Shown one piece after another: positions 33,101 through 64,000 of a stretch of DNA of 64,000 bases. Position 1 is the stretch's first letter, and the number at the start of each line of letters is the position of its first letter. Below the pieces are notes generated by a model, which saw only the letters and a list, made by a program, of their open reading frames with translations, was not told the origin of the DNA and did not search any database. The position numbers were made by a program, and so were the translations under genes. Origin of the DNA: Phallusia mammillata (taxonomy: Eukaryota); NCBI GenBank assembly GCA_965637545.1, contig OZ281495.1, forward strand, positions 22,010,001-22,074,000. Direction: 5' to 3'.

Positions 33101-33814
33101 TAGGTTCCAACAAACTTTACGCTTTGGTAAAAAATGTATGTATAACATAAAAAGGTTAAAACATCTGTGATGATACTTGTGACATAACCTATTTTTTCTT
33201 CATGGCCTTGGTATTACAAACCTTTCTGCCATATAGTTTAATAGTGTCGCAATTACTTTTTCGCATCAAAACAATCAGAATGACTCTCTACTTATATGGC
33301 CACAATTAGGCCACCAAGTATGGCTCATTTCTCATTTAGTTTAATTTGGTTTTAGTGTATGACCATCAGAGCCAATGGGAAGATAAGTTCACTAACCTGC
33401 TGTGTGCCATGTTGTTCCAGCAGTCAGTTTATCTTTTTCAAGAAGAACAACCTTCCCAGCTCCATACTTAGCTAGATGATAAGTTGTACTGCAGCCAATA
33501 CTCCCTCCCCCTATCACAACTACATCAGCTTCTGTAGGTAGCTGCTGGGTGCTGTTGGTTCCATTCTTGCGACTGGAGGAATGCTGATGTAAATTGAATT
33601 TGGTTGCTGTCCTGCTGCAGTTTAGTGTGCTGAGAAGTCTGCATAGTAAAATTTGCATTAACACAGCATACCTTGTTGTTGTTGTGTTTTTTAAATGCTC
33701 TTAAATGTGTAGTAAATTGTGCAAGGATATATGTTACCTGACGCTTTGTGCAAAATATTTTTGTTTGTCAAGATTCAGATGAAGTTTGTTGCATCTCCTG
33801 ATAAATCTCATCAT
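27152..33814 (-). CDS. SARDH: Sarcosine dehydrogenase-like flavoprotein, copy B (closest to canonical SARDH motifs)
   Basis: 17 exons: 33814-33738 (basic mitochondrial-type presequence [13 protein letters not shown]...), 33638-33397, 32713-32535, 32183-32004, 31853-31704, 31647-31468 (GC donor), 31382-31253, 31168-30991, 30779-30638, 30213-30013, 29865-29634, 29251-29104, 28967-28863, 28559-28411, 28109-27947, 27866-27759, 27317-27152. Motifs [64 protein letters not shown]. Internal exon lengths equal those of copy A. Confidence 0.94.
27545..27635. mobile_element. Degenerate right-end fragment of the MITE family seen at 20499-20932
   Basis: CGGTTTCAGTCGAGTTTTCAAAAAAAGTACGATCCAAAACCGAAAC...CAGCCAACCGAAACTTCACTAG aligns by eye with the right end of the 20499-20932 element. 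Confidence 0.55.
28647..28728 (+). ncRNA. tRNA-like Pol III unit (tRNA pseudogene or SINE head), antisense within an intron of SARDH copy B
   Basis: A-box/D-arm GCTCAATTGGTAGAGC, 5-bp stem GAGTC/GACTC with 7-nt loop, B-box GGTTCGAAT, TTTTT at 28724-28728. The acceptor stem does not pair. Confidence 0.65.
32209..32300 (-). tRNA. tRNA-Tyr(GTA): tRNA-Tyr (GTA) with 19-nt intron, inside intron 3 of SARDH copy B, same strand
   Basis: CCTTCGATAGCTCAGTTGGTAGAGCGGTGGACTGTAG-[TGGTTGCAAACCGTCAGAT, 32263-32245]-ATCCATAGGTCACTGGTTCGACTCCGGTTCGAAGGA. Perfect 7-bp acceptor stem, anticodon GTA at 32267-32265, intron after position 37, downstream TTTTT terminator. Confidence 0.96.
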
Positions 33815-36097
33815 AGGAAAGGGTCGTTTTGTTCACAACAAAACAATTTGATTAAACGGTACTCTAAACAAAGTTTACATTTCAAAATCAAATAATAACA
33901 CCACACATTAAATGCAATTATGTATCAAAACTTTGTGATAGTCTTGCATTATCTAAGCTAAAATCTATAAATTTAAGCTACACAGTTCACTAACAAATGA
34001 CATTGCATTTGTTTTTATGAACTTAAATAACTTTTACCACCTTCACTATATTAAAAGAAAAGTTGTTGGCATTTCATGACCCATACAATGTTAATAACGA
34101 AGGTACAATTAATAAATACACAAGTACATAGTGTTCCTTAAAATATTAAAAATTCCATTTTCAAATAAAGGATGTTAACAAAACATATATTAAAAAACAT
34201 TTAGATTATGTCTGGTGCATTCCATCTAACTAATAGTAAAAGCTCATTAATAAGGACATCCTGTATCATGTACATCTGCATTGCCAGGATTTTGTAGAAA
34301 GAAAATTTACAATTAAACACAGTAACAATATAATAACATCACATAACTTTTAAAAATCTATAAGCGATTTCACAACACAAATATTTGAGTAAATTCACCA
34401 AGCACATTTACTGAAACCGGTGCTGCCACATGCAACTTGAACCAACGACTTGGCGGCATGAATAAAGATATGCTGCAATGCCTCGGCACACATCAGCAAC
34501 AACGCCCATATGTACACAACGTACGAAGGATGGCGAACAGTATCTATTATCCAGACTCACGTCGAAAGCGACGAACTTAACTAAAATTCAAAATTAATCA
34601 GCGCTACTCAGCAGCCGCTCGTTTTTGTCCAAAGCAGTTGTTGTTTTGTGCGTTCGTTGAAGCGTGACGATGGCTACACCACCAGTAGATCAGCTTTTGT
34701 GTGTTACAGCGACCGTTAAAAAATCATCTAAAACCAATTTGTTCCATTCATATAATGATAAAATACATTTTTTTGTCTAGCTAAGTGACTAACCAGCTAC
34801 ATAAAAACAAACTGCAAAGACTGCTTTGCTGCTAACACTGCTAAAAACTTTCTTCCGGCGCAAAAACATGCGATGATTAGGTCTTTTATTTGTATTTACA
34901 ACTTTCTCAACAGCATTACACGATTACGCGTTCAATGTAATACAGAACACATGCGCAATGGGTGCAGGAACGAAAGACGCAGTGTGGCCATTTCGCAAAC
35001 GAGAACACAATTAAACCATGCTGCAGCAAGTGCTTGCCACGGCTTAAACGATTTTTATGTTAGCAAATGGCACGGCCACATGCGTTAAGTCACAAAAAGA
35101 CCCACTAAAGGACGAAATGCGCAGTTAGACTGGGCACATTTTCAGCCCTTGTCACCTTGTTAAAAAATTCGCCCTTTGGGACGCAGTAGTCAAATTAACA
35201 TAAATGTTGGGATTTGCACACAAAAATTCCAGTGAACTTTTTTCGGCGAGCAAATATCACGACATGCGATACAATCAAAACTGCACACGTCAAAAAACGA
35301 AGGAAAAGAGATTTTTAAAGGAGAAAAATTCGACACACATTTTTGATGTATAATTTTACGCTGGGTTGTCTATACCAGTTAATTAAGATTCGACACTACC
35401 GAAAACACATGGGTTCCTACAGCCACAAGCATGCCAACGTTTTCTGGCAGGTCTGGATAAAACAAACCTGCATACACATAAAAAAAAACAACTCTGAAAC
35501 TATTGAACGTTCAATACAAAATGGTAAAACATTTTATGTAAAAAGTGGATGGACACACAAAGAAAAGAAAAAGGCGAAAGTGTAAAAGAAATGAATAAAC
35601 TAAAGCTTGAGGTATTTTGCCTCAAGTCCAGAAATAAATGTCGCGCAGGTACAGTTCAATTAAAACGGTGAACATATAACCCAGACGCGCAGCATTCATG
35701 ATTGAAAAGCGCGCGTGCAAGAGAATTAAAATGCGGGCACTGCAATAGTCAAGTGCAATTGGTTGCGTCAGCCAACTGCCTGTTTTGGCGTCAAACCCGC
35801 GCGTTTTAATAATATCAGGCAGTAGATTTGAATGCGTCACATAGGTAGAATACAGGCATACAACCGCACTGAATCATACACACACATACATACGCGTGAT
35901 AGTCAACAGATGAACTGGCTTTGGAACGGAGGACAAAGAACACAGACTCCCATACATCTTTGGCACAATTGCGGTTTTGCACTCACACACTCGTGGAAGG
36001 ACATAAACACTTAGCGCACTCACACCACGGATTAAGACAATTCCAGATGTCTGTTGCTGTTTTGCTTGAGCTGAGAAGTTTACCGACTTGGTCGCCG

Positions 36098-39000
36098 CTA
36101 CATTATTTCCTCGTCCAGTGCATGAACACAGTCGGCTCCCAGTGGTAACTTGCTGTCGTTCAGCAGTAGAGGAGCGTTCACTTCGCAGTCGTGGACCGAG
36201 AGCTCCGGCAAGAGATTTGAACCCCACGAGTCACAATCTGTTAGACGTACAAAGGAAATACTGCTTATATAGTCACTCGTCAACATACGCTTGTACTTTA
36301 GCTGACGCAAGGTTGAGAAATTGCCTTTGTGGCTTAACGTTTATTGGTAACGTGGCTTTTCAGTTAAGTGGCATAGTAAACTGTACAAGAAAATGCGAAA
36401 CAGACTTTCAAAACTATCATGGCACTAATATTTACTAAAGTAATCACACAAGTTTTAATTTGATTTACATACCAGCAGTTGAACTGAAAATGTCTCGCTG
36501 TAGAAACAAGTTTCGTAGTGGCTCGTTTCGTCCGTCACGTTTCTCTCCTGTAACAAAATTACCCATTGTATTTTTTTGAAGAAAAATGAGGTTTTTCAAT
36601 TCTTAATTTGGCGACGCTGCCGGCTTATTTGATGTCTGCGGGTTAAGGTTTTAATAGAGAAACGGCTAAGGCTGCTGAATCATGAGATTTAAAAGCAATT
36701 AATGCCTAGCGTGCAAAGAAACCTCACCTGTACAGCCGTAACCCGTTCCAGGCTGAAGTAACACATTGACGAACTGCTGTAACTGAGCTGGGTTGCGGCT
36801 TTTGGCTGAAAAAGTAAACATACATTTCGTTAGGAACGATGTGTTTCTCGAATTAGGAAAGGGGAATTCACGCAAACCAACCATTATGCAAAACACTACG
36901 AATTCCCGTTTAATATGTCACTTGTAATATAAGATTCTTGGAAGGTTAATGATTTTAATAAATGCCCAAATAAATCATTTTACTTCATATGAAACATGGA
37001 AATAGTGTGTAACTAACCTTGTGACGCGTTTCCATTGTACATCGCTTGACTTTCCCGGCTCAGACACCTTCGCTTTTGGCTGGGAAGTAGAGGTGCTGTA
37101 GGTGATGCAAACTTGCCCGCCGCATTACTTGAGTGGTTCCGCTTGCGAGCGTAAGCGTTGTGCAGGTCTGCGTTGGTTAAATTGCCCACATATCCACGCT
37201 GTAGATTCGCTTTGTGCTCAGCAAACTTCTCATCCCGCACAGGTACGGTTTGGTACTTTTGAAATCGGCCAATATCTCGAGCCAAGGATCTGGGGCCCTG
37301 CGACTGTGGTCCTTCGTCGCACTGATAGCCACCGGGAAGGCTGATCGGACTTCCGCAGTACGCGCTGTCGCACGGGCTTATGGAGCTTCGACGAAAGTCG
37401 TGCGTGTTGTACGGTAACGGCGGTGGCCCCTCCTTGTCGAACAAGGGCAGTGGCATCATGCGCGTCATTCCGCTGCTGCCGTTATCGATTTGATTCTGCG
37501 CCTATTGGAACGAATTCGATGTTAAGCAAACAGCTATGTACAAGGTGGGGGTAGATAAGAGAACAAGAAGCGGTTTATTCGGTAGCCTAAGTTTACTCTG
37601 TTATTTAGATTAACGTACTGCTGTGGGTTTGTAATACAAGCTTTACCTGATTAAAGTAATACTCATGCGCGACGAACATACGCGAGTAGTTGCATTAAAT
37701 GTGAAGCGTGTAGGAGAATTATCATAAAATCGCCAAAGTTAAAAATACATTTTCGTGCAATCAGCGGAGTCTGTCTGCACGAATTTCGTTTCTCTTTGAA
37801 AATACCTCGCACACATCGCATGACGTACATGCACCACTAAATGCCGCAGGCGGTTACAGTGCAAAAGATCAACAAACTATGCGAACCGCGGGGCACAGTT
37901 TATAGCTAATAAAGCATATTTTGTGTTCAGGGAAGAAATATTGTGCTGGGTGCTTGACGTCAGGCAGGGAGGAAGTTGTAAGAAGGGGCCACCTAATCTG
38001 ACCCAGCACACCATTTAAGCGACGTCAAAGCACGAATTCATGACCACGTAGGAAAACAGGGGTCTATGGCGGAAAGGGTGTTCTGCCCTGTACCTTTTGA
38101 TTGGTTCTCAAGGATGGGTATTAGATTGTAAACCAGGGGCGCCTGACCATTAGCACGTCATTTATATGGCAAGAATAAATCTGACGCTTACCTCGGAAGG
38201 CGGGGATGCAATGACAAACGCGTTTTGCTGCTGTTGACCCTCGTGACATGGTTTTTGGATTGCAGTATTTTCGACAGCCACATCACGAAACAAATCCTCC
38301 AATTGTTCTGCAATTTTGAAAAACAATTGGAATCGCTAGTCATTTATTTGTCAGTTGCAAAAGCAAACATTCAACCTGGTAGGGTAATTATTTTCTAACT
38401 AAGGGATCGAATACGCAACAAATCGATATATTGATAAAATATATTGCTTACCTTTTTCAGGTGAACTGTAGGTCCATGGATCTCCGATAGAGGGAGCGTT
38501 GAAAATGAGATTCTCATCCAATGTTATTTCTGCGCAAAGAAGTTTTAGTTTATTAAGGGTGGCTTTCGAATTTCGAAACAAAAAGAAGGAAAAATCCCAA
38601 GTCAAGGAGGTTATATTTAAAAGCACCACCGGCAGTTCGCCGTATTGCGCCATAATTCACCCACCGTCATTTTCGTCCATGTCGGTCAAGGTTAGTGGCA
38701 CAATCTTGAAATCGCCATACGATGGTGGTGCATTTTCCTTGACTGCTAAACAAAAAAGAAATTTAAATATTGGTTCCCATGAAACAAAAGGTGTACAAAG
38801 AGTCTACTGTCATAGTATAAAGGACAAACAACTTCAGCAAAATTCCCGATTAAACGTCCTTTTGGGCAGGTTAATCATTTCTAAGATTTGTGTTTAAAAG
38901 ACTTGACTCATTCAACCATCGTTTAACAAACAAACGGAGATTCACTTTGAAGAACTGACCTGGTGTTTCGGTCGGCGCTTTTAGCAAGTCATCGATAAAT

Positions 39001-42000
39001 GCGTTGTTGTCATCCAGCACAAATTTACTGACTTCTTCAATTTCGGCTTTTTCCTGTAAAAAGAAACGCATTTAGCGGTGGCAAAATTCCAGAGGAAGAA
39101 ATCAGTCTATTATTAGAGCGATTATTGAGCCACCATACGGCAAGAAGCATTATACGTAAGGACTAAAATGTATTTAAATTTGGTAGGTTGGTCAGAAGCA
39201 TTTTGCAATACGCTATATGTCGCAATCGAAAGAGGTTTTATGTCAAATTGTGGTATCAGCTGAAATGGTGCGGAAATGCCATTGAGTCGCGAAAAGCTAT
39301 TTCTGGGGTCCGTTCTGGGAAAAGATATCATACCAATCGATTAACGGATTTAAATTTTCTGTATTGTACGCACCTCTTCATCGCTGCTTTCAATGGGAAC
39401 CATATTGAATGGCATTGCTCCAACGCATTGGTGTTGTTCGGTCGAAAATACCACATTCTCGTTCACTGGGCCACTGCAAGAAAACATATTTATGACTTGC
39501 AGAGGACGGTCGCACTAATTAAGTTTTTTAACTACATGACGAAAAGTACCTTAACACGTAGTGGACGCAAACGACGCATTGAGGTTTCTGATTTTTGGAG
39601 CAGGGAATAACAGTGGCCTGCGTCACGATCCAGTGGTAACCACCAGTCTTAGAGAGGAAACGGTAATGAGTGGTTTCAATCTGGTTGAGTCGGTACACTG
39701 TCATAGAAATACAAGAAACATATTGATAAAGTTTAAAGTTGGTATTGGAGACTGCTAGTAGCAATCATAAGACTCACATTTATGGAAGAAGTCTTCAAGT
39801 GGTTTTATATCAAGAACGTGACAGTAGTTGAAGAATGATTTTCCCAGCATGTCACTTTCGTCGTAACCGAGCAATTCCGTCACCCTGAAGCGAAATGCAA
39901 CCATTCACAACATTAGGTCAAATGAAATTGGGCCAAGGGTTAAATTCACAACACTGTGATTCATCGAATAAAGATGAAAATTTAATGTTTACTTTTTTAC
40001 GCGACTATGTATGTAAATCCAGTAGATGCCTTTCCAAACCGCCAAAGGTTATTGACCTGGCATGTATGACGTTTATGTATAAACTGTGCCCCACCTATCA
40101 TCGCAGTAGGAGAACTTCATGTCAGGCGTATGTTGTGTTAGGAAGGTTTGGCTGTCCAGAAAATGCTCGATGTTTGACGGATGGGGAATCGGCTCGGCTT
40201 GTACAACAAGCAAATTCGAGTTGTTGTCATCTGTAAAAAATCCTTTAGGTCATGGTGTGTTCGAAATGGTGGCTTATTGATGGTGTTAATCCGAAAACAT
40301 ACCTTTGACAACCTTGCGGAACCCACTGCACTGAAGTACCTAAAACATAAATGTTAACTGTTGAACAATGGAAACCAAAGATCTTAATGGGTAATTATCC
40401 TAAAAATATTACATGTTGGTTAATGGACTGTGCATAATACACGAATATCCGGAAATTCCAGAAATAGCAGGTAAGTGACAAAGGCAAAAAATACCGGCAA
40501 ACATGTTTTGACGGGACGGTCGGCCACAGACAAAAGAGCCGCTGTCCGTCGCCACTGAAGGGGTGAAAGCAAAGCTGCAAAAGCGCGGCCCAGATCGTGG
40601 TAAACAAGTCTAGCTGCTCATTTGAGCTAAGCGCAGGATAACGAAAGAGAAAGCAACAACTGACGCATATTCGGGGGCTCAATACGTGTTTCGCGCAATC
40701 GGAAGCAGCGAGGCGTGTTACAAAAACAAGTAGGACTCGCTTGAACCTTGGTCACATGACCCGGGCTCTTTATCTGCTGCAGACGCACAAGGTTAAACAC
40801 TTTACCGGCAACGACGAGAATTTTCCATTGTTTTTTATGCCAAAAATACAGTGCGAAACCGAAAAATTTAACTCGGACGCTTATTCCATAGGACTTCACT
40901 CAACAGAAACTGTATTAAAATGGTCACAAATAAAAATATACTGCCCACTAAAACAACTTTTAACTAACACAAAACATATTAACAATAGTTTGTCATTTAT
41001 GTTGCTACCACGATTTAACTTTGACACTTGCGCTTATCCAATGGAACTTAACTTAACATAAACTGTTTCAAAATAGGCACAAATAAAAAATATACTGCCC
41101 ACTAAAACAACCTTTAAACTAACAGAAAACATATTTACAACAGTTTATCGATTGTGTTGCACCACGGTCTGTAGGAATATTAATCAATTACGATCTGAAT
41201 AAAAAACAAACATTTTTGCAGTTGTCGCAAAATTGACACGAAAGTAGTTTAGCGGCATCGCAGAATGTGCAATAAGCCGGGGGCGCCCCGATCGTGATTG
41301 GGCTATTCTCGAAACGACCAGAATGTAAGAAGAGACAAGAACTGATTGACCAAAACAAGAGCACACAAGAAATAGACTAGCCCGCCGAGCGATGTGCGTA
41401 CGTGAGCGCTCAAAACCAGCAATGGCGGCAGAAAATTTGTCAGCGCTGGTCGGGCTTATGCCATCGACTGGTTCTACTTACAGCACACAGTGGACAGTAT
41501 AGTTTCGTTTGTAACACTACTTTCATTCTTGTTGGAACGCGAGTTTTAGAGACAACAGTTAACACTTTGTGCTAGTTAGGAATACATTTATCGACAAAAC
41601 CACGACCACAACGGTAAGTAAACGCACAGAACAAACAAGTGACTAATGATCTACCAACCAACCTTGTAGGACGCTGATTTCAAGTTGATGCTTTTGCCGT
41701 TGACAGTTAATGTGCTCTTCATTCGCAAAAAGAAGGCTTTGTGAGTTGAACGTTCAGTGACTAAAATAAACAAATACACACAGTTGGTTTAACATTGTGG
41801 TTGGTATAACACTGTACGAATTTGATTATGGTACATGTTTGGATTACACTTACCATCAGATTCATTTAGGCACCCTCTTATTTCCTCATGATCACCTTCA
41901 TGGACAAAGCTGAGTATGCTTTGACCAATAAGATCCAACTGCAAAAGATTAAACACCACAAACTTAACCCTTTACCAAACTACACAATCACACTGTCAGT

Positions 42001-42905
42001 GGTTGCAAGCTTTTTACCTTGGATAAACCCAGGTAGTCCTTAACATTTTCAGAACAGTACAGAATATCAGAATCAGGGGAAAGAATAAATAAAAATCCAT
42101 TTAGGGCATTCACAAAGTCTTCACTTGCCAGAAGATGTTCATCCTCCAAAATTTCTTGTTTTACACTGAGATCTGGTAATAATGTTTAGTTACATAACAT
42201 GCTGACTACTTTTATCAAATTGTTGGTTGCCAATCGTACCTTTAATTGGAAGTGTATTTGGGTCCACATATGCCTCACATTTGCCAGTCAAACTCTGTCG
42301 CAGTCTTATGTAGCTGTTTACAAGTCGCATGATGGATGATCTAAAATTTTAAAGAATATTTTATATTTTTTTGTAAAATGTTATGATACATTTATGCCAT
42401 AGCAAAAAAACTAAATTCCAAACAATATACCTTCCATTTGAAATTGTTTTTAGTGAAAACTGTTACATCTACTGTTGGTTACATAACAAACCACATTTAG
42501 GGTAAAAAGCGCCCATGGAGTCAATCATTACACAATGAGAAAAGGTGCCCACATTACACACAAAGGACTTGGGCTCCTACTACCTGTCAAGGTTGCTGAC
42601 AAGGTCATGTGAAACAGGGAGGAGGTTGGCAATTTCTTGAAAATATACAGTTTCTTTCGTCCTTCTATGCCTGGCAGCATCCCTGCTCTTTTCTCGCCTC
42701 CTTTGCCTGCAATAGAGTATTATGTTAGTGCAAAGCCAACAATAATACCAGTATTTATGTTGCTATTGGTAAATTAGCTACACTACAACATGGAATATTA
42801 GTATGATCACTCACTTTTTAGCCATTGGTAGTGGAATAACAGTATGATCACTTACTTTTTAGCCATTGATGGTTTGAGTTCTTCTTCTTCGGGAAAGACA
42901 GACAT
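36098..42905 (-). CDS. HIF1A/EPAS1-like: Hypoxia-inducible factor alpha subunit (bHLH-PAS-PAS-PAC, ODD-like region, C-TAD)
   Basis: 18 phase-compatible coding exons: 42905-42856, 42706-42584 ([17 protein letters not shown]), 42340-42240 ([14 protein letters not shown]), 42172-42018, 41938-41854, 41760-41663 ([10 protein letters not shown]...NLKSASYK), 40339-40303, 40230-40095 ([10 protein letters not shown]...DMKFSYCDD), 39884-39778, 39697-39550 ([20 protein letters not shown]...[11 protein letters not shown]), 39473-39374 (VVFSTEQ...PIESSD), 39053-38960, 38742-38665, 38529-38452, 38307-38192, 37501-37018, 36805-36728, 36237-36098 ([19 protein letters not shown]). Confidence 0.95.
40922..41170. 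repeat. Diverged direct duplication (~95-bp unit, ~155-bp spacing) in HIF-alpha intron 6
   Basis: CACAAATAAAAATATACTGCCCACTAAAACAAC...AACATATT...CCACG occurs at ~40922-41015 and ~41076-41170. Confidence 0.75.
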
Positions 42906-43072
42906 GTCTTCTATTCGTTGTAGTACTAAATCAATCGCAAATATCACTGGTCTGTTAATAAGACAACAAAAAAAGTATGGTTCTTAAATCACTTTGAAGT
43001 TTGAACTATACTAATACAAAACAATTTAAACCAAAACAACAGTATGATTTTGTGCACAAAGGGACAGCTCAC

Positions 43073-43630
43073 CAAATAAAGTAATTTAGTGGTCTAATTA
43101 TACAACTACTTGCAAATAGCTACACATTCACTTGCAACAATACGATTGTCTGCAACAATACCTTTGTCTGCACGTAACTAACTCTTTTTGAAACACGTTG
43201 CATATATTATTTCCATAACTGTTTCATTACATATTGGCGCTCTGCCTGTTATTGTTTGATGTATTTTTGTAATTAACTACACAACCACTACCAAACGATT
43301 TTAAGACCAGTTCAGATGTCAGATGCCGATATTATTTTGCTGATAACCATGCCTGCTCTCTTGCATTTAGGGGTGTGTCACTGTCAGAGTGTCTGACTAA
43401 ACTTTATTATCAGCTGGACAACAAACACCCACCTTTCCAGCACTCTCCTCTCTCGCGATGACGTCCTACCGCCTCATATTGCGCAACTGGTTCAGCCTTT
43501 CTTTCAAAGCTCGCAGTTTTTCTGACCTCTCTCTTTCTCTCTCTCGTATCAGCTCCAGGCACCAACCAGCGACAATTCTGCGCCTGTCAGGGCACTCCGA
43601 AATCGATCTTGTGCTGTGACACAAAATGCT
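43073..43630 (-). other. Putative non-coding 5' UTR exon of HIF-alpha containing several upstream ATGs
   Basis: Acceptor TTTTTACAG at 43632/43631 and donor G|GTGAGC at 43073/43072, upstream of the acceptor at 42951 that leads to the HIF ATG. No long ORF in any frame. Splice signals only. Confidence 0.5.
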
Positions 43631-44899
43631 CTGTAAAAATTAAAAGGCCGCTGCTTCCTCTTGTATAAAACTGAATAGTAAGTGAATGCGAATCAAGGTT
43701 TTTTTGAAGGCTATCTGGCAATTAAAGGCTAACAAAAATTTGCCGCAATCCTATATTTTTGCATGCAATACGAAAAATCAGCATTCTGCAACTTTGTGTC
43801 AAAGCTTATTTAATTTTATTTATAAAGGATTGATTAAAAAACAAAAACTAAACATCAAAAATATACTACTTATGAACATTTAAAGCCTGGACGTAATGCA
43901 ACAGAAAACCATTATATCAGATTTAAAACAGTGGTTTCTAACTTTTAGTGTTAATACCCCGTTATGATTCGTTAAGTTGGCGTGCCCCTACAAATTCACA
44001 AGAGGATTTGTGCATTTTGTGGTGTAACAATTTAACTTTTGGAACATGAAAAAGGATGCATCGAACCCCCGGACGCTTTCAAGAAACCCTTTAAAGTTTA
44101 CATAAATCAATAACATGCAATCGGCTCAGTTCCATACAAAACAACAGCCTCGAGCTAGATGTTGAGGGGCAATTCATTAAATCTAAAATCATTCAGACAG
44201 ATCTTTAGCGGCAGTTGGTGGTAGCACATTTTAAAATTCTCATGATAAAATATACTTAAAGATACTATTCTTTCAAAAAATGCAATATTGATAAATGTGC
44301 GATTTAAACTATATTCAGCAAATACTTTTTGCTTTTGGCCAAAACCATGTAGTGTGGGATCACCAAAACAGCAAAAAACAACAATTCCGGTAACTGAAGC
44401 CGTCAAAGTAAACCAACTAATAAACTCAAAAGGTAAGTACATTAAATACAACCAAAGGATTTTTAATACTCTTTAAAACAAACCCTTCTTTTACAAAAAC
44501 TTTTTTAAAACAAGTAATTGAGTACTGGGGACTTTCCCTCATTCTTTTTTTAAGGCAGGGATTTACCAAATACCGTAGCCAATTTATTTAGTATACATCT
44601 TGCATTTTCAAATAATGCATTTACTGAAGTAGTGCACCAAATAAAAACAGAGAATGTTGTCCAAACTAAGAGTTGTAGCGGTTGCGACATAACTTGTTAT
44701 TATTTTTTGACTTTTGAGATAACAAAATCAAGCGAAAACTGCTAAAGTAACCAACTTTTGTTTAACAAACACAAAGTTTTTGACGAGTTTCATCATAGAT
44801 AGCTAGTGGTAATCTATAGTTTATTTAGTTACCGAAGAGACAAAAAGGAGGCAACGATAAGATTCTCAATCACAGCAATATTCTATTAAATTAAAACAA

Positions 44900-45175
44900 C
44901 AGGTGTACGTGACTTTATTGCTTTTTGTGCAACGTAGCGTAAAATAAGTCACGTGACTTTGTTGATGTTCGCAATTATGAAACTTCTTTGCTTTTGTTGT
45001 AGTTTATTTTGTTCGTGGGTAAAACTCAAGTCAAGTATTTAAAAATCGTATATAGGAATTGCCTGAACCTGGGTGGCTGGGGTGTCGGCATATGTAAGTT
45101 GAATAAAGATTAGAACGCATCTGAATACGAAGTCAAACCTTGGACCTGGCTAATGGCCATTGCCTACGTGACTAC
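44900..45175. promoter_or_regulatory. Candidate bidirectional promoter between HIF-alpha and ETHE1 with clustered ACGTG/E-box motifs
   Basis: TACGTGAC at 44906-44913, palindromic GTCACGTGAC at 44948-44957, TACGTGAC at 45165-45172, between the 5' ends of two divergent genes. Confidence 0.5.
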
Positions 45176-45381
45176 TGACTAGTCATGAGGTGCAAGTACG
45201 AACGAAGTACCTGCATTGCAAAACAGTTAACTTTGGCGTTTGACAATTCGTTGCTAAAGTTATTTGAGTTAACGAAATATAAGTTGTTTTAGTGACGTTT
45301 TAGATAAAAAATTGTTTTTGGTAGTTACAGAATTTGTTGTTACCCTGGTTTTTATAATAGTATTTTGTCTGCAAATAAAAT

Positions 45382-47897
45382 ATGAAGTCTTTTCTTTCCT
45401 TGGGTCAAAAAATGTTGATGAAACTTTCTGCCATACGTAATTCTGCTTCAATGTATGTTTCGGATTGTGTAATGCTATAGTTAAGCTGTAGAAACTTTTA
45501 TAATTGCTATTTTAAACTATTTTAGCTTGCAACAAATCAGGTATGCTCATGTGACCAAGTTGGGCAATCAAGCTAAGGGACTGCTGTTTCGACAGGTAAC
45601 TGGGAGCATTGTAATATAGCATATTTAACATTATAAAATCTTGTGTTCAACACTTTTTTCTAGTTGTTCCATGATGCATCTTACACATACACATACTTTC
45701 TTGGCTGTGCAAAAACCCGCAAAGCTGTGGTCATAGATCCTGTCTTAGAAATGGTATGTCAGCATTAAAATTTCTGGTTGATTCCATTCTAAACATATGA
45801 TCATATAGTAAGAAAAACTTTTTTTCAGGTGGACAGGGATATTAAGTTTATAGAAGAAATGAATCTGAAACTAGTTTATGGATGTAAGTTGTGCTTTATT
45901 TATAACATTTTATCAAAATAGAGTTTTGGAAATACTTTGCAGTAAACACCCATGTCCATGCTGATCATGTAACTGGAACAGGAAAATTAAAACAAAGAAT
46001 TCCTGGGTTTCAATCAGTGTTATCGAAAGCATCTGGTGGAAAAGCTGATATGTTAATTGAGGATGGTGAAGTCATTCAGTTTGGTGAACAGGTGCATAAA
46101 AATTATATTTTGATGTGTATAGGTATTTGCAAATAAAAATTAGATACTTTTAACTCCTGAGAAAGATATTATTCAGTGGAAGTTGTCTTGATAACTGAAA
46201 TAAACACAATTAAAAAATGTTCAATTTGGTCTGTTTAAAGTTCTTTCAGGTGATACAAAAGTGCCATGGTATTGCTACTTTATTCACTGTGCAACCTTTT
46301 GGTATTAGTTTGCACAAGTGGCTGATTTACTGAAACCACCATAGCCTTTTTGGATTAAAGGACATAATTTTGACAGTCAGCTAATTTCAGTTTGTTTAAT
46401 TTGGCACCAGCTAGGTTATTGTTTGCATTAGTTCATTCACTTTATGTCTATGACATTTTTTCTCAACCAGCGGTTCATAAAGAAACAAATTAGTCATAAA
46501 TCCTAAAAAGAATATGTTCAGCAAAATGTTCGATTAAAATAAGTCAAAAAATACTGTGTGTTTGTTTCATGACAAGCTTGAATTGCTTTAGTATGTTTAT
46601 TGGTTTTTGTAGTCAATTCACTGTTCTGCAACCCCTGGACACACAAATGGCTGCATGACTTACATTCTACCAGATCATTCAATGGCCTTCACTGGCGATG
46701 CACTTCTTATTCGAGCATGTGGAAGAACTGATTTTCAACAAGGCATGGTTACATTGTTGTAAAATTGTTTCAAACCAATGTAAAAAGTACCATGTACAGA
46801 TGATGTGCAATGTGCTCACGTTGTTAAGACTCTATATTGTGTAAGCTGCATCCCAATATGTTTAGTTAATGTTGTACTTCCTTCCATTTTAGGAAATGCA
46901 GGGCAGCTGTACGATTCAGTGTACAAACGAATTTTTTCTTTGCCTGATCATTACTTCCTCTATCCAGGCCATGACTACATGGGTAAGCATAAAAGCTGAT
47001 GTTTGCTAAGGTCGGAACATTTTCTGGAGTGTACTTTAGTGGTTAACAGAAAACATAAATTTGCACAGTCAGGTATTTGACTGGCTGGCAAAGAAGGTTT
47101 AATAAATTTGAGTTCACAAATGTGTGCTTCCCTACTTGATTTTTCTTACTTTTACACAAATTGCATATTCATGGAAACTTTGTGTAGATTTGTTTGATTA
47201 AATCCCCAAGTTGCTGCTGTGGATTCTATGCACAGAGGACCACCTTTACAAAAGAAGTGTGTTTCTACTTTTTTCTGTTTTACAGGCTTTTCTGTGACGA
47301 CAGTAGCCGAAGAGAAAGTTCTTAATCCTCGTCTCACACTGAGCAGAGATGAATTTATCAACTTCATGAAAGAGCTGAACCTGAAGTATCCAAAACTTAT
47401 TGGTATAATCTAAAATACAAGTGTATTTGGTGTGTGTTTGTATGTTTATGCTTAAAGAAGTTCTTTTACAACGTTTTTTGCAGTATTGAAACCGACCAAA
47501 CATGTCCAGTAAAAAATATGCATATATAAACAATGCATTCTAAAAACAGCAAATCAGCAAAAGTAGTGTTTGCCGGTCTCAAACATGGCCTTTGGCTTAG
47601 TTGCTTTATGTTTGCTCGTTGAGTGTACCTGTGGTCTACCCAGAGCACCTATAACACTAGATTCTTTGTCAAGTGTAGGGTGAATAAACCAATAAACGAA
47701 TGGGTGTGTCATTTGTTGTGCAGCAATTCAGCAACTTGAAAATTAATCTACATTCACTACCTGTTGCTTTATTTATTTATTTTTTGAAAAAAATGTTTTG
47801 TTTCTTATCAGACATCGCTGTACCAACGAATCTCAAATGTGGTGAGATCAGCAAAGAGGCTCTACAAGGATCTGCGGAACTGCTCAGCAAAAAATGA
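45382..47897 (+). CDS. ETHE1: Mitochondrial persulfide dioxygenase (metallo-beta-lactamase fold)
   Basis: 9 exons: 45382-45452 (alternative in-frame ATG 45412), 45526-45595 (GLLFRQ), 45664-45753 (TYTYFLG...AVVIDPVLE), 45829-45883, 45943-46091 ([11 protein letters not shown], HxHxDH), 46613-46742 (TPGHTNGC...[19 protein letters not shown]; GC donor), 46893-46982 (YPGHDY), 47286-47402 ([12 protein letters not shown]), 47812-47897 (AVPTNLKCG). Confidence 0.95.
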
Positions 47898-49107
47898 TCC
47901 AAAACCAAGCAATTTTTTTACTTTCTTTTATTTTTTTTCTCCATGCAACGTTCGTCAATGAGTTCATCATTTTAAGCTTACAAACGTTTTAATGAGTTTG
48001 TCAAATTTTGGAAAAAGTTCATTATTGATGTATTTTTTACGCTATTGTGCTTAAGCTTTCGCCTTAAGGTTAAGAGATTTATATGAGATGAAATGATCGC
48101 ATGGTTTTGCTGAGAAATCTCCGCTTTCGGTTTTATTAATGATATTGTAATTTCAACATATTTCAAATTAACCAAATAGTTGTTTTTACGCCAAATAATA
48201 CTATTCTTTTTGCATCTTTTTAACACCCTAAACAGTCTTAATTCGGTTTTGCTAGTAAAACTAGACGAATATATTTAATGAAGGTTATTTTGTAACGCTC
48301 ATTGTATCATATCCAATACGTACATCATCCGTACGTAATGCGGACGTAAGCGTTTTGTGACGTATTTAGAATGGCATTTTCGCTCGACATTGAAGTTTTG
48401 CGCATGCCAAACGTCACGTACAACACAATGACGTTGCGGAAACAGAAGAGCATACGAAATCAACCGTGACTAAACGCATTTTATGTTCATTCTTCCAAAC
48501 ATGTGTAACACAATTTTCATTGGATCATTTTTATGATTCACCGGATTTCAATCAACAAAAAATATTTCCGCATGTTATTTGTACCGAGGCAAAAAGATTC
48601 TTGCTTAAGGCTATTGTGGCACATGAATAGACAATAGAAACTTGTGCGTGTTGATTAAGTAGTTTTTAAATAATCACATGCTTGCGCTTTTGTTACCTCT
48701 TGTTTGCTTTTGATTGGTGTCGTTCGAATGAGCTTTATGTCATTTGTAGTGCTTTCGCATCGCTTTTCGCATCTTTTCCTGTCTTCACAAGTTGCGTAAT
48801 GACAATGCCTTCACCGTGTGTCGATGGTATGATTTTGCACGGAAAGTTCGCAAATCGAAACTTTTTAGCCATTAAACGTCTCAGTGCTCATATGATGTAT
48901 TTACAACACAAATACTGTAATGTAATGCGCAAAATACGACGACAGTAACAACGTTTGCCATGGAACATATTTGCCAATAGCCATTATGCAGAAAAATTGC
49001 AAATCATTAGGTTTTCGCGTATGCTTTGTTTAGCCTGGATGTACAAATCTCATTGTTTATTTACAATACACTGCAATGATGTTAGCTACAGCAAAACAAC
49101 CCCAAAA

Positions 49108-50317
<1,210 letters not shown>

Positions 50318-51067
50318 TTTAAAGTTGCAAATAATAAAAAAATCTTTGTAGCCTACTCTTCTAATGACAAAAACAGAGAGGAAATCGAGAATATGTTATA
50401 GCCTATCTTTCACAGAAATCCCACTTACTTACATTACCTACAACATTTGCACTGCGCCAAACGAATTGTTTTTTAGCTTTTTCGCAATTTTGCACGAGCC
50501 TCGATCAATTCTCGTTTAATGAGTTTGTTGATTATCCTGTCCAGGTGCAATTTGCAGATGGTGTAAGTGCCGAACTAGATTTAATCGTTATTTGTGCTGC
50601 ATTTATTTGCAGCCTTATGTTCCCTACTTCAATTGCAGTTCGAAATTGTATCATTTTGTAGAATAGGTAATTTTATCCCTTAAAAATCAATTTGATCGTG
50701 GTTTTGCTCACAATTAAAGCTTTGATGCAGTACAAAAACGCACCGTTCTTCACACACACATAAAGCAAACACAAGACGTAATGTACACAACAACAATGTT
50801 AAAATGTATCCGACAGATTTAAAAATACATGTAAAATCGTTGTAAAATTAGTGTAGAAAAACGTAAACGAATATAAATTTCTTCATTGCAATCACAATTT
50901 CAATAACTGCTGTCATCAGTGCAAAAAAGCGTGTCGAGGTGTTCAAAGCATTTTAAACCAAAAAATGGCGCGTCATGTTTCTACGAAAGATAATAATTGA
51001 AAAATGCAAAACCAATTCCCAATGCAAACCATCCGAGCAAATTTAAATCTGCGCAAACGTATTTTAT

Positions 51068-54000
51068 CTAGAGTGCATTCAACTTCTTTGCGAGCTGCTC
51101 TTGTAAATTCAATGAATATTTTCCAAATAGCCTTTTGAACTGTGGATCGAATGGGCTCGCAGTGTAAGCCTTGGCCGGGTGTTTCACCGCCATTCGTTCA
51201 ATTTCAAAGTTTCCTTCGGTAATTTGTTTGTTAGTAATACCCGGAACGTTTACGTACCTGCAAATGTTTAAAGGATTTAACATAGTTTGGAAAAAAAACA
51301 TACTACAAGGATATCGTCAATGGCGTTTACCCGTATCCAAGGTTTGTATCCAAAGCGTAAGCAAAATCAGCATGACGCAGGAAGCCAACAACTTCGTCAT
51401 TGAACCAAATCGCTTCATGGCCAGTTATAGGAACATCCCTAAAGTAAATATTCATCACACATTGCAGCTCAGTACTTGATAACAGCGGACAGTGAAAGTT
51501 ACAGACGCCTTTATGAAATTTTAAAGAGTTTTCGTTTGTAAATTGAAAGAAAAAAACAAAAAAACAGTTCGTCGCCTTATTAATTATCAATCAAGTAATG
51601 TCTGGATTTAGGATTAAGCTCAGCCTTTTCTAATTCATTTTAAAATGTTTTGTTTTTCTCACGTGTCAATAGTGAAACAAACAAGCTTTTTGGGTAGTGG
51701 TTTCTTCTGGAGTTCGGCCAGGGCTTTGCTACCAATGTAATCGGTTGAATTTTCGCAGAATCGTAGCAAACCCGCTTCACCTGGTGTGTCGCCAGCGTGA
51801 ATGCTATGTGACCAATGATGGAAACCTGAAAAGAATTGCATTTTACAATGGTTAACATGCATCATGTTAAATGTATAACGTAAAGATTTTGTCATGTCCT
51901 TGCAACGTACAACTTAATAAAAATACCCGTTTCTGAGCTTAACGATTCCATTGCACGGTATCCGGCCACGCATGCGTTGTGTTTGTCTGCTTGCTCAATG
52001 ATAGCGTCATGGATGCATTTTACGTCATCGCTATGGCAATGAACTTCGAATCCAAGTTCCCCGACGAAGGATAATCTTGAACAACATACATCAGCTCCTT
52101 GCAATGTGGAAAAGTACCTGTTTTTCAAGTATATATACTAACCTGCCAAGCATCACATTACGACCAGCAATTTCACTGTTACCCCAATGTGCATATTCGA
52201 GCCTATTCAGGATATTACTGTCTTGGACGATCGGCGTAAGGATGTCGCGACTAAACAAAATAGAAAAAAAAGTACATAAACTGCCCGTCTTTGGATTTGA
52301 CAAGATTCCTACTAAAAGCCATTTGTGCCAGTTGGTCCGCGTCTGGCCCCGTTAAGAATATTTTTGCCATGTAAGAAGAATCCAGAAGAATAGCTGAAGT
52401 TCTGCAAGTCAAACATTCCTTTCCAACCTACGATATTTAGAAACACTGATGAGCAGAGCTGATTTCATGAATTAATATCGCAAAATAGGTAAGCATGTTT
52501 TGTTTTATACCCGAAAATAGAACAAAACATGCTTACCGATACGAAAGCTTCGGTGAAGCAAACAATATTTCACAATTTAATTATAGTTTGGTTAACAATA
52601 CGCCTGCGAGGGGTTAGTGCAGCGGCCTTGTGCTTACAAGATTGTGATTGCTAACCCCGTCTCGACGACTTGTTCTTCTGTTAGCATTCCTTCATCGAAA
52701 TGAATGACACATTCTTAAATCGAACACACCAAATAAAATATGGGAGACTTATTGTGAGTGTATTTTAAGTATATTATTTCCGCAGTACCCGTATAGCGAG
52801 GACAAAACTAACAATTAAAAACTTACAATTTTGTGGGAGTCAGGAAATTCAAATGTGCAATCGTTCATTATAGCATCACAATACGGGTACGGATAGTGTT
52901 TCTTGTTGTCATAGGCTCCATAAAAATCGTAGTCAAGGACCTTCAGGTTACGATTGGGTTCATTTTGACCGTCTTTTAAGTAATAAGCTGGACGTTCAAA
53001 TCCATATCGGATGCCAAAGAGTGCTCCAAGATCTGAGTCAGTCTACGTAAAAATATGGAAACAATATGAACAAAACGCGAAAACTAAAAAAAAAATATTT
53101 ACGTTCAATAGGAAAAGCTACCTGATGAAGTTTAGTTTTCCGTTGGTTTCGTCCCCCAAGGCTGTGATCTCTAGCGTAAACCAAACTGTAACGCTTGGCA
53201 AACCTCTCATGACACGTCTCTGTTAGCCATTTGTTATAATTCGTAAAGGAAGTCGGGTATCGTCTGAACATACATGGTGGAATAAATGTTGTGCCCAGGT
53301 TCTTGCCTCATTTTAAATTTTACCTGATGTCGCAGTTAAAGAGATTAATTTCAGGTCTTCCGTGCGCCACCCAGTGGGCTAATTGCCTTCCCGCTCCCCC
53401 TCCTAACATCATTCCTCCACTGTTGTATCCGCTACCCACAAAGAATCCTCGCACTTCAGGCGACTCACCCATGTTTGGTTTTCCATCCGGTGTGAATGAT
53501 TCTGCACGAAAGTCAAACATTCGATCACGCATCCTTGAAATGATTGGAGTATACCGGACATTTCAAACACAAATTTGATCAGTTTCAGAATCGACAGGTA
53601 AATTAATTTTTGTGGTCTTCACAAAAAAGTTGTCTTTCCCAGCAATTACATGACCCCCAGACATAGTTAGAAGTGAGGCTGAAATTACAGCCCAATACCA
53701 AGCTCGAAACCCGATCCGAACATTTTTGTTATAAAGCCCCAATTCAGCCTTGAGAAGGTATTTTTAACGGGTTTGAATGGCGAAACATATAAAGTAGCCA
53801 ATTGCGAAGTCAGGCCTAAATCAAACCTACTTTATATCAACTTAATGTAAAAAACTACGATCCGATATACCTGGCCCGCAAACCGTCGATCTTATCCCAA
53901 CGTTTCCAACAGCTGGTATTCGATTTACTGCGGCATCGAAGTGCTGTGCAAATATATCCCAGTCGACATCATAAAGGCCAAATGCAAAATCAGCTGGAAG

Positions 54001-56024
54001 CTTAAAAGGTAAAGAGGTTTTTAGAAAGTGAAAAATTTAGATGTGTTTTTCACATCAAAAAGTTAAAAGTAAACGTGCTTAAATTATTCTACCCACGTCT
54101 TTTACGAGGTGAGGATTCATTTCATATCCGCCAAATTGCAGAGCATCACCTTGTGGTTTAATATACACGGTACCGTGATCCTTTATAATCGGTGTGTTTA
54201 AAATTCCCTTTATGCCTTGGGTCACAATGTAAGCATGTTGAAAAGTTAACTGCGGAATTCGAACTCCGGCCATCTGCATAAAATCAAAATAGAACATAAA
54301 TATGTCGTTTTTATGCGACGCTTGTTTCGCACCTTTTTATTATTCCTTTATGCGACTAAAGTGTATGTAAACGGGTGTAACTGATGTGGCCGTCATATCA
54401 CTGATGATGGCATGAGCATTTGCCGAAACGTTTGAACAATAAAGCATGTCGCCTTTTACGTCTATTTGGGCCGTTATTTTCACCATTAAACTTATGAACA
54501 GATCCGTATATAGTGTTCCAAAGAAAATAAATAGCACCAAACTATGTCATGAAAAGCAAACACACCATGTTTACCTACCTTTCCGATGTAGGGCGACCAG
54601 GCGCCGGCGCAGTTTACAACATTGTTTGTCTTGATGGTTCCCTTGCTTGTTTCCACACCGACAACTCTTTCAAGACCAAGATGGTCTTCGGCTTTTAAGA
54701 TACCATTTACGCTGCAATTTTCAAATACCTGTGGACAATAACCGATTGTTTTCCACGCCCCATATGAAGTTTAAATTTGTACATTTGTAATTTACACTAC
54801 TGTTGAACCAGAAATCACAAATACTGCAGAATACTACCTAAACTACCCAGAAGTTTTGACATTATTTTTACCATGGCGCCACGATGCTGAGCTGCTTTAA
54901 CATACGCCATGCAATATGTTGCGGGATCTATAGTTCCATCACCTGGCGAATACACAGCTCCGTATACATCATCGACATTCAACAGTGGATGGATTACCTT
55001 TGCCTCTGACGGCGTTATTTCTTGTATTTCGACTCCAAGCCCTTTAGCAAACTTGGAAGACGGTTATAAAAAGTTATTAGAAAATTGTATGTGACCAGCT
55101 GCTTACTGATGTCTGAAGCGTAATATCTTTGTATTCTTCCTTAGACTTTGCTGTTAAAATTGTGCCAGTACGTTGCCATCCGGCACTATCGCCATTTTCC
55201 TCAGGTAGTACCTTGCTTATTAAATCTCGTGTTTGCAGTTGTAACAGTGTTTCTGATTCGCTGCCACGAAAACTCCACAAAATTCCTACAATATACAATT
55301 TACGACATAAGAAAAGGTGATCCAAGCATTTTAGGGGCCAGGTTGCAGCAGTTGTTTGTGTGGCCCTGGAGAGGATAAAATGTGCTGGAACGAGATTTTT
55401 CTGACACCCCATTAAACACTAATCGTCTAAATAAGCCGCAGTTTGCATCAAAAACAGAGACCAAAATGCTATACTTTCAAACTTTCAAACTGGACAGGTA
55501 AATCATAAAATTCCGTATAGCTGTTATGTACCATGCTCATATATTTTTGGTCTATTTGCAAACTGCTTTATGGCTCACAAATTCAAAATAAACCTTATTC
55601 GTGTGCGTTGATGTCATATGATGCTTTTGCTTTATTGTTGCGTTTCTCCTTACCAGCCCATTGTAAATGTTTGTGTTTAACTAACCTACAAATAGAGCTT
55701 GTTCAGTAGTTTACCTGCTGTATGCCAGGTTGTTCCAGAAGTAATTTTGTGTTTTTCAACAAGTACAACTGAACCACCACTTTGCTTTGCAAGGTGGTAA
55801 GCAGTACTGCATCCGACACTTCCACCACCGATTACAACCACATCAGCTTCAGTTGGAAATTTGGCCCGGTCTAAAGTGTTGTCACTCTTGCTTTTGTGAA
55901 TTGATGATTCATATGGCACATCCTTAACATCTTGTGATTTGTAACGAGTGGAATGAAGATAAGTTCTTGTACACCTCAAAGTGGCCAATTTATTCAAATC
56001 TCGCATTCTGGTAGTAATTGACAT
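51068..56024 (-). pseudogene. SARDH-like: Sarcosine dehydrogenase-like copy C with an internal deletion causing a premature stop
   Basis: Exons 56024-55715, 55285-55107, 55051-54872, 54728-54579, 54273-54097, 54000-53871, 53501-53324, 53263-53122, 53042-52827, 52427-~52272 (truncated), 52250-52143, 52075-51927, 51825-51663, 51438-51331, 51257-51068. Relative to copy D, the 3' part of exon 10 and all of exon 11 are missing; read-through gives FMYFFFYFV-stop at 52253-52251. Confidence 0.8.
54301..54531. mobile_element. ~230-bp insertion in intron 4 of copy C, possibly a Penelope-like retroelement remnant
   Basis: Absent from the homologous intron of copy D (61635-61709); flanked by ATAAAT on both sides; contains CTGATGA...GAAACGTT followed by AATAAA. 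Confidence 0.5.
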
Positions 56025-57215
56025 GTTTTGAAATCACTATGTACTACTAACACAAGACTAGCTAAAAGTGGTGAAAAATGGCAATGTAAATACAGAATTT
56101 GTTAGTTACAATTAAATATTGTTTAGCAAATCTGAACTTGTAACACAACAAATCTAAAATTATCTATAACATGTAACAATTTACTTTCTTCATTCTCTGT
56201 AAATATAGTGTAAATATAGCTTTTCTTGCATGTTTATGTTCATAATATGTACTCAAATGAAGTTTACTCATGAGTTATTACAGCTTGCATTTTGGCTGCC
56301 TACACAGCTTGAACTCCATGCAGTCCTAAAAAAACAAAACTTTAAAAACATTAGTTATGAGTTAAAACCCAGATACTTATATTACACTTAAGTTAACATT
56401 TTCCTGTCAAAATAACCGTTGGTTAAATAGCAATGTATTAAGTTGAAAGCTCTATTTTATAACACGTTTCTCCCAAAAGAAATCATAACCCAGTCAAAAG
56501 AACTTCTTACCGGTTTGTTGGCAATTATTCACCATTATCCACAGTAGGGTTCCTTCTCGATAAATTCTCGAGAAGTCTCGAAAAAAATCGAGTCTCGATT
56601 CTCGAGAAATTATGTCACGTACACAGAAAGTGCATGCGACACCTCTTATAACGTGTATTTTTCGTCGAGAAACGAAGAAGTCGGGAAATAGAGGAACCCT
56701 GATCCACAGTCATTTCAAACCAGCAGTTTCGCGGGAATTACCCAAAATGGATACTTAAAATGGAACAATAACATCCGACCGGGATGACTAAGCATGTATT
56801 TACTTTGCCTGTTTGCTTCAAAAACAAAATATTAGCTTGGTATTGAAAAATGAAAAAAAACTGAAAAATGGGTATTAGTAGTATTTTTACCCGTTTCTTG
56901 TATAGCCTATACATAATAGCATGTTTTTTCAAAACTTTTGTGTGTGTACATAAATGTAATATTTCGTGTACGGTATGCCGTTTGCAACCAGTTCATACTG
57001 TCTTCAGGCATAAACTTTGAACTATATAGGTTGGCTATAGCCTATGTTGACTTGGTAATTTCTAACGAAAAAAACTATTTTTGCTCTTAATGCAACACGG
57101 TGCAATGCAAGTGATCGATAGCAATATATTTAACGACAAATCGAAATTTATTTGTATCAATTGAGTTCCAACGACATTTTTTTCGTGTCCTGTTTTGGTT
57201 ATTATAAGCATAGAT

Positions 57216-63911: not shown

Positions 63912-64000
63912 GTTTTAAAATCACAGGCACTACAAAAACAAGACTAGCTGAGAGTGATGAAAGAATGGCAAATTGACATCAGCAAAAAAAATATGTAAAT

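Follow-up and report, generated by a model that had tools for sequence, protein, structure and literature searches.

A 64,000-nucleotide (nt) stretch of the genome of the ascidian Phallusia mammillata (contig OZ281495.1, positions 22,010,001 to 22,074,000 of the forward strand; hereafter the window, to which positions refer unless a locus is named) carries a gene for the hypoxia-inducible factor HIF-alpha on the minus strand and, as its divergent neighbor on the plus strand, a gene for the persulfide dioxygenase ETHE1, with 2476 bp between the two ATGs (42905 and 45382). The first-pass annotation of this DNA had placed the two genes head-to-head, with about 2.5 kb between coding starts, around a single promoter containing three ACGTGAC sites. 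The layout and both gene identities are confirmed here by Pfam matches, the deposited protein P0001 and the solved structure 4chl. Below, we describe an ETHE1 promoter that lies beside HIF-alpha, is E-box-driven and has HIF-type sites alongside; we regard this promoter as real, and the gene pair as partly conserved.

Single exons of the minus-strand gene score above the Pfam cut-offs for bHLH_HIF1A (PF23171, 2.9e-11), PAS_3 (PF08447, 8.2e-7) and HIF-1a_CTAD (PF08778, 1.2e-11). Its exons are those of the Phallusia mammillata protein P0001, which bears the UniRef name "HIF hypoxia inducible factor, Phallusia mammillata" and is 41-48% identical to vertebrate HIF-1alpha across about half of its length. 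The DCEVNAP motif (the FIH asparagine context) is present, and the gene qualifies as class I bHLH-PAS. On the plus strand, two exons have human ETHE1 (4chl) as their best match among solved structures (1.6e-17 and 2.3e-8), with glyoxalase II behind, and the exons match Pfam Lactamase_B and hold the metal-binding motifs HxHxDH (NTHVHADH) and PGHT...TGD (PGHT...FTGDALL). By fold, closest relative and motifs, this gene is an ETHE1 persulfide dioxygenase with predicted enzyme activity; judged by eye, its N-terminus looks like a mitochondrial presequence. Neither an Rfam scan nor a listing of open reading frames uncovered any further gene or RNA between HIF-alpha and ETHE1.

Between the two genes, TACGTGAC occurs twice (sites 1 and 3) and the palindromic GTCACGTGAC once (site 2), and the earlier statement that all three fall within 270 bp is exact, the total span being 267 bp (Table 1). 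The sites are off-center: the ETHE1 ATG is 210-476 bp away, and that of HIF-alpha 2001-2267 bp. Chance expectations were derived from dinucleotide-preserving shuffles of the local sequence (n = 5000 each for the intergenic region and for the central 1 kb). For the motif named beforehand, 3 loci were observed against 0.06-0.13 expected, and at least three loci arose in 4 of the 5000 intergenic-region shuffles, compared with 0 of 5000 for the central 1 kb. When any 7-mer was admitted as a control, the real window contained 19 comparable triples against a simulated mean of 19.0, so that the weight of the cluster rests on ACGTG being a known site beside a HIF gene. Furthermore, sites 1 and 2 each belong to one copy of a 19-nt direct repeat (copies ACGTGACTTTATTGCTTTT and ACGTGACTTTGTTGATGTT, 84% identical and 44 bp apart) and thus cannot be counted as independent events; they probably arose by local duplication.

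Across the window, the 8-mer TACGTGAC is found 6 times, with 1.19 copies expected. The remaining four copies have no flanks in common and only some of them lie near gene 5' ends; one is inside a gene body at 59915. Another copy (48413-48420, minus strand; TTGTACGTGAC in its own sense) lies in the tail-to-tail spacer between ETHE1 and a CTHRC1-like gene, in a patch that has the highest CpG observed/expected ratio in the window (1.5) and no evident gene start. The copy at 56614-56621 (minus strand), GTGTACGTGAC, is the same 11-mer as at site 1 in the same gene-relative orientation; it lies upstream of copy C of sarcosine dehydrogenase (SARDH), a mitochondrial enzyme, ~580 bp from the ATG of that copy (about 56030). 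Among six sites, a 3-nt flank common to this copy and site 1 is within chance.

The 5' ends of the transcripts were examined by comparing contigs of RNA-type runs from four studies with positions 42400-46200; such contigs bound how far upstream a transcript extends and cannot give an exact start or an expression level. Introns of both genes in this stretch were confirmed by contigs in all four runs (42706-42854 in HIF-alpha; 45453-45525, 45594-45661, 45753-45827 and 45884-45942 in ETHE1). The X5 HIF-alpha contig ends at 42953, where it is joined to GAGTACGGG and ATTCTATTTGAATA (in gene sense, ...GGG followed by ATTCTATTTGAATA), and the X5 and X9 ETHE1 contigs start at 45323, preceded by GTACGGG and ATTCTATTTGAATA. 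Together with the genomic AG, ATTCTATTTGAATA makes up the 16-nt leader ATTCTATTTGAATAAG, which is the dominant Ciona spliced leader (SL; PMC1488885, Table 1). This leader is not encoded in the window (0 matches with up to 2 mismatches), and we read the extra letters ending in GGG ahead of it as a cDNA-synthesis adapter. The HIF-alpha and ETHE1 mRNAs are both SL trans-spliced; their mature 5' ends are therefore the two acceptors, which lie 2370 bp apart, and the true starts are upstream, in discarded outrons. The 16-nt leader, the AG acceptor and the occurrence of SL and non-SL transcripts together are as in the SL trans-spliced monocistronic genes of Ciona, from which no difference was seen, and represent the ordinary ascidian pattern. 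Because ascidian mRNA 5' ends are trans-splice sites, bidirectional-promoter calls made from coding starts are unsafe.

The longest ETHE1 contig (X1, 2388 nt) runs unbroken over 45001-45452 and has all four of the downstream ETHE1 introns of the examined stretch spliced out, and thus represents RNA. It derives from another haplotype, with three single-nucleotide polymorphisms (SNPs) and a 3-nt deletion, and leaves site 3 unaltered although one SNP lies only 14 bp from it. With 45001 as a bound, ETHE1 transcription begins at about 45000 or further upstream. The center of the palindrome and of the E-box block that surrounds it lies ~47 bp upstream of the end of this contig (about 44999), sites 1 and 2 together lie 45-95 bp upstream of the contig, with site 1 at 86-93 bp, and no contig from the four runs was found within 42954-45000. 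Thus, of the single promoter proposed at first, the sites and the divergent genes stand, whereas the sites themselves fall at or inside the ETHE1 transcript start, ~2 kb from HIF-alpha.

Table 1. Features of the HIF-alpha/ETHE1 locus in window coordinates
Feature	Position	Strand	Remarks
HIF-alpha gene, coding range	36098..42905	-	ATG 42905, stop 36100-36098; Pfam matches and identity to P0001
HIF-alpha C-terminal activation domain	36250-36101	-	
HIF-alpha PAS exons	about 42149-39531	-	
HIF-alpha bHLH exon	42705-42584	-	
HIF-alpha trans-splice acceptor AG	42952..42953	-	mature mRNA from 42951, 5' untranslated region (UTR) 46 nt
HRE-like (hypoxia response element-like) TACGTGC, single canonical	43171..43177	-	~220 bp upstream of HIF-alpha acceptor; read from sequence
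Candidate HIF-alpha promoter elements (inferred)	43382..43466	-	in HIF sense, GGACGTCA (CRE-like, cAMP response element), then TCGCGAGA, then GACACTCTGACA
Site 1, TACGTGAC	44906-44913	+	first copy of 19-nt direct repeat (44907-44925)
Conserved E-box block GCGTAAAATAAGTCACGTGACTTTGTTGA	44937..44965	+	contains site 2; Clavelina counterpart L001 5328-5300 (-)
Site 2, palindrome GTCACGTGAC	44948-44957	+	within conserved E-box block
ETHE1 outron, or long 5' leader of non-trans-spliced transcript	45001..45324	+	X1 contig
Site 3, TACGTGAC	45165-45172	+	within transcribed ETHE1 leader, 152 bp upstream of acceptor
ETHE1 trans-splice acceptor AG	45323..45324	+	mature mRNA from 45325, 5' UTR 57 nt
ETHE1 (persulfide dioxygenase), coding range	45382..47897	+	nine exons; stop at 47897
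CTHRC1-like gene	49111..50317	-	tail-to-tail with ETHE1; Pfam CTHRC1_C 3.3e-13 and 4.1e-6

A search with the PAS-B exon yielded full-length ascidian HIFs, and cluster members P0267 and P0271 were traced to genomic loci; for P0004, P0119, P0151 and P0153, no genomic record turned up. In the window, HIF-alpha is flanked upstream (divergently) by ETHE1 and then the CTHRC1-like gene, and downstream by SARDH. Clavelina lepadiformis (locus L001) has ETHE1 (ATGs 5.7 kb apart) and then CTHRC1 upstream and SARDH downstream of HIF, in an order and with orientations identical to those of the Phallusia window, which defines a four-gene block, SARDH-HIF<->ETHE1-CTHRC1. Ciona intestinalis (L002) keeps only SARDH-HIF of this block: three PARP-domain genes lie upstream of HIF, the divergent neighbor being one of them, and no ETHE1 or CTHRC1 exon was found within 10 kb of it, so that the break falls between HIF-alpha and the position of ETHE1. 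In Styela clava (L003), no gene was called within 10 kb upstream of HIF, one partial gene without a Pfam hit lies downstream, and no ETHE1, SARDH or CTHRC1 exon was found within 10 kb on either side. The synteny survey across tunicates that had been suggested for the pair thus gives a divided answer, with the head-to-head arrangement recurring in Clavelina and no ETHE1 near HIF-alpha in Ciona or Styela. In the HIF gene tree, Phallusia, Clavelina and Ciona form an unresolved three-way split with Styela outside, and gain and loss of the arrangement are therefore indistinguishable. Because Ciona lacks ETHE1 beside HIF-alpha, a break between the two genes is tolerated, which argues against a strong constraint keeping them together. 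The head-to-head arrangement appears to be part of an inherited four-gene block common to Phallusia and Clavelina. In the human genome, HIF3A and ETHE1 are both assigned to 19q13.3.

Clavelina has a sole CACGTG in its intergenic region, which lies toward ETHE1, ~1 kb upstream of the ATG of that gene, within a patch richer in CpG. Around this CACGTG lies a counterpart of the Phallusia E-box block that reads GCGTAAAAAGGTTCACGTGATTTTGTTTA in ETHE1 sense and has the same orientation as in Phallusia. Outside the six core letters, 17 of the 23 flanking positions are identical between the two species, a score that no other of the 54,172 L001 positions reaches (empirical fraction 1.85e-5) and that is notable because the HIF proteins of Phallusia and Clavelina are just 45% identical. 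Kept in both species are the class-B E-box core TCACGTGA, that is, CACGTG preceded by T (-4) and followed by A (+4) (present in GTCACGTGAC in Phallusia and in TTCACGTGAT in Clavelina), the upstream GCGTAAAA and the downstream TTTGTT. The 7-mer ACGTGAC of the first-pass annotation is not conserved, Clavelina having ACGTGAT, and its intergenic region contains no TACGTGAC. Both promoters have a second site of the RCGTGA type (ACGTGA) at the same spacing and on opposite sides of the E-box, with GACGTGAT of Clavelina 43 bp away on the ETHE1 side and TACGTGAC of Phallusia 44 bp away on the opposite side. We judge the evidence that this block is conserved to be good but not overwhelming, and the 29-bp block offers a clean target for a reporter assay.

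As to the factors that might bind these elements, the palindrome GTCACGTGAC is the CLEAR 10-mer of MiT/TFE factors (PMC9562866), in line with the MiT/TFE assignment proposed at first. The element resembles CLEAR-type class-B E-boxes (MiT/TFE, USF) in being a perfect 10-mer just upstream of the longest transcript end; it differs in that its target acts in mitochondrial sulfide oxidation and not in the lysosome, and in that Clavelina (TTCACGTGAT) does not keep the G and C at the two ends of the 10-mer. E-boxes of the sequence GTCACGTGAC can also be bound by USF and by ARNT homodimers. The best SIM1-ARNT2 site derived by systematic evolution of ligands by exponential enrichment (SELEX), GGGTACGTGACCC, is matched by TACGTGAC; SIM1 and HIF core motifs are indistinguishable, and HIF-alpha prefers T and G at -4/-3 (bioRxiv 10.1101/2022.02.01.475276), which are the letters found at site 3 (flank TGCC). 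The original assignment of the RCGTG sites to the HIF/ARNT type is borne out to the extent that TACGTGAC, with its TACGTG core and ARNT-side GTGAC, fits the SELEX models and would be a near-optimal HIF/SIM-ARNT site, but one that is not conserved as such in Clavelina. TACGTG is not an E-box, so that ARNT heterodimers are a better fit to sites 1 and 3 than bHLH-ZIP factors are. Hypoxia response elements likewise have several copies near a promoter of an RCGTG core that reads TAC toward the alpha subunit and GTGAC toward ARNT; the copies described here differ in lacking conservation as TACGTGAC in Clavelina and in that one of them lies in a transcribed leader. On these SELEX grounds, HIF/ARNT input to ETHE1 is chemically plausible; HIF control of ETHE1 is plausible, and a shared hypoxia-sulfide switch is possible.

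The CpG observed/expected ratio is 0.28 in the first 1.5 kb of HIF-alpha and 0.15-0.4 in the ETHE1 body, 0.7-0.86 at 43250-44000 and about 0.9-1.0 at 44500-45500, and it climbs from 0.3-0.5 to 0.7-0.9 near the candidate HIF-alpha promoter elements. In Ciona, CpG depletion marks transcribed, germline-methylated DNA; if the same holds here, the HIF-alpha unit ends near 43300-43500, and the profile would fit two separate transcription units. Upstream of HIF, Clavelina carries, in the order seen in Phallusia, two CREs (L001 8891 and 8908) and an identical 12-mer (L001 9328-9339). The CRE-like and TCGCGAGA element at 43451-43466 has a collinear counterpart there; regions of such size can have a 12-mer in common by chance. 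The CpG profile and the motifs make a separate HIF-alpha promoter near 43450 (43400-43600), ~1.5 kb from the ETHE1 promoter, most likely. In the proposed check of transcript starts, performed with RNA contigs, the ETHE1 transcript reaches 45001 and both mature ends are SL acceptors; the HIF-alpha start would be at ~43450. The locus shares with bidirectional promoters the head-to-head orientation and an intergenic CpG content richer than that of both gene bodies, but the usual limit for such promoters is ~1 kb between starts, compared with 2370 bp between the mature 5' ends and ~1.5 kb between the inferred promoters in Phallusia, and with the 5.7 kb between the ATGs in Clavelina.

These distances also bear on the suggestion that HIF-alpha regulates itself through the three sites, which their position does not support: they are 2.0-2.3 kb from the HIF-alpha ATG, with a separate HIF-alpha promoter likely, and such autoregulation is unlikely. 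If autoregulation exists, the TACGTGC at 43171-43177, with an AACGTG ~20 bp further upstream, is nearer to HIF-alpha than the three-site cluster; TACGTG occurs 17 times in the window, and a single copy near HIF-alpha is thus at chance frequency. Over most of the window the CpG ratio is near 1.0; strong depletion (0.15-0.4) is restricted to a few short stretches (41500-43000, 45500-47500, 33000-34500 and 55500-56500), among them the body of ETHE1, the beginning (5' part) of HIF-alpha and, for two SARDH copies, the 5' ends. In Styela, a full CRE, TGACGTCA, overlaps AACGTGAC (together AAACGTGACGTCAGCG; L003 6463-6473) 3.5 kb upstream of the HIF ATG.

Overall, we favor, with a confidence somewhat above even, the reading in which the sites belong to ETHE1's own E-box-driven promoter and 5' leader, the HIF-alpha promoter is separate, and the two genes sit in an inherited four-gene block. 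ETHE1 transcription would start at or just upstream of about 45000, and most transcripts would be trans-spliced at 45323/45324, with loss of the leader and of site 3 within it. The core element of the ETHE1 promoter would be the palindromic class-B E-box (TCACGTGA, contained in GTCACGTGAC), most likely occupied by a CACGTG-recognizing bHLH dimer, either bHLH-ZIP (USF, MiT/TFE) or an ARNT dimer, which presumably drives basal ETHE1 expression; the two TACGTGAC sites could possibly add oxygen-dependent input. HIF-alpha, trans-spliced at 42953/42952, would use its own promoter near 43400-43600. Several points weigh against this reading. Contigs cannot map a start, and 45001 only bounds the upstream reach of the transcript; a long HIF-alpha outron might extend to the E-box region; and the binding factor cannot be told from sequence. 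The flank match of the E-box was noticed post hoc. An unanchored local alignment of the Phallusia and Clavelina intergenic regions was not significant (score 17 versus a null mean of 17.4) and k-mers common to the two regions gave nothing above chance; with the alignment null, the claim of conservation rests on anchoring at the sole CACGTG in each region.

A second reading, which we hold unlikely, takes the TACGTGAC sites as working HREs through which stabilized HIF-alpha/ARNT would induce ETHE1 in hypoxia or sulfide and might feed back on HIF-alpha, forming a functional module. The TACGTG core shared by HIF and SIM, the ARNT-side GTGAC of the best SELEX sites, and the T and G at -4/-3 of site 3 are consistent with it, as are the RCGTG-type GACGTGAT near the Clavelina E-box, the excess of TACGTGAC in the window and the head-to-head pair in two ascidian orders. 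In Caenorhabditis elegans, the induction of sqrd-1 by H2S requires HIF-1, and H2S is lethal to ethe-1 mutants (bioRxiv 10.1101/628784). The pathway logic, a HIF factor and mitochondrial sulfide-oxidation enzymes, is the same, but the worm link is a genetic one, for which the cited HIF-1-dependent induction is that of sqrd-1, whereas the link in Phallusia consists of physical adjacency and motifs only. Against working HREs stand the distance of the sites from the HIF-alpha ATG and the likely separate HIF-alpha promoter, the conservation of TACGTGAC in neither position nor sequence in Clavelina, the local duplication behind sites 1 and 2, and the lack of ETHE1 beside HIF-alpha in Ciona and Styela. 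Moreover, ETHE1 is not named as a direct HIF target in the part of the literature consulted, and literature searches turned up nothing on HIF/ETHE1 linkage, on a set of HIF targets in ascidians or on HIF control of ETHE1.

Equally doubtful is the view that only the E-box matters, with one TACGTGAC site being a by-product of local duplication, the other of chance in a CpG-rich promoter, and the adjacency being neutral leftover synteny. The any-7-mer triples at the simulated rate, the 19-nt repeat shared by sites 1 and 2, the TACGTGAC copies in a gene body (59915) and in the tail-to-tail spacer (48413), and the missing adjacency in Ciona and Styela all fit this view, as does the frequency of TACGTGAC in the three other ascidian loci, which is at chance (1 in 94 kb). 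It does not readily account for the strong local excess of a motif named beforehand, for the additional ACGTGA that both species have 43-44 bp away from the E-box, or for the intact site 3 in a second haplotype with a SNP 14 bp away.

We consider it quite improbable that Phallusia and Clavelina have selectively kept a cis-linked hypoxia-sulfide unit, in which the E-box and the shifted RCGTGA sites would let HIF/ARNT raise the O2-consuming ETHE1 at low O2 or high sulfide; if true, no earlier case of direct HIF-to-ETHE1 wiring would exist among chordates. More generally, if HIF drives ETHE1 here, the worm link between HIF and sulfide would extend to chordates, and a compact promoter of ~300 bp would be at hand to study the coupling of oxygen and sulfide sensing. 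For now, the value of the result is chiefly practical and lies in the caution on 5' ends, the E-box block and the synteny block. The idea that TACGTGAC is a general ascidian promoter word was rejected given its single occurrence in 94 kb elsewhere, its unshared flanks and the position of only some copies near 5' ends.

Among the neighboring genes, the CTHRC1-like gene of Phallusia has a Collagen match slightly below the cut-off (26.8 versus 27.2 bits). In Ciona, the tandem PARP-domain genes (L002 806-8484, minus strand) occupy the place where Phallusia and Clavelina have ETHE1 and CTHRC1, and the nearest of them ends 1.5 kb from the HIF ATG. Phallusia (28000-33664), Clavelina and Ciona all have a SARDH-type gene as the immediate downstream neighbor of HIF-alpha, oriented like it, and the Phallusia window contains extra SARDH copies at 51000-56033 and 58400-63914. 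Inside the SARDH copy downstream of HIF-alpha, a tRNA of 92 nt, probably intron-bearing, is found at 32209-32300 on the minus strand (Rfam, 58.6 bits).

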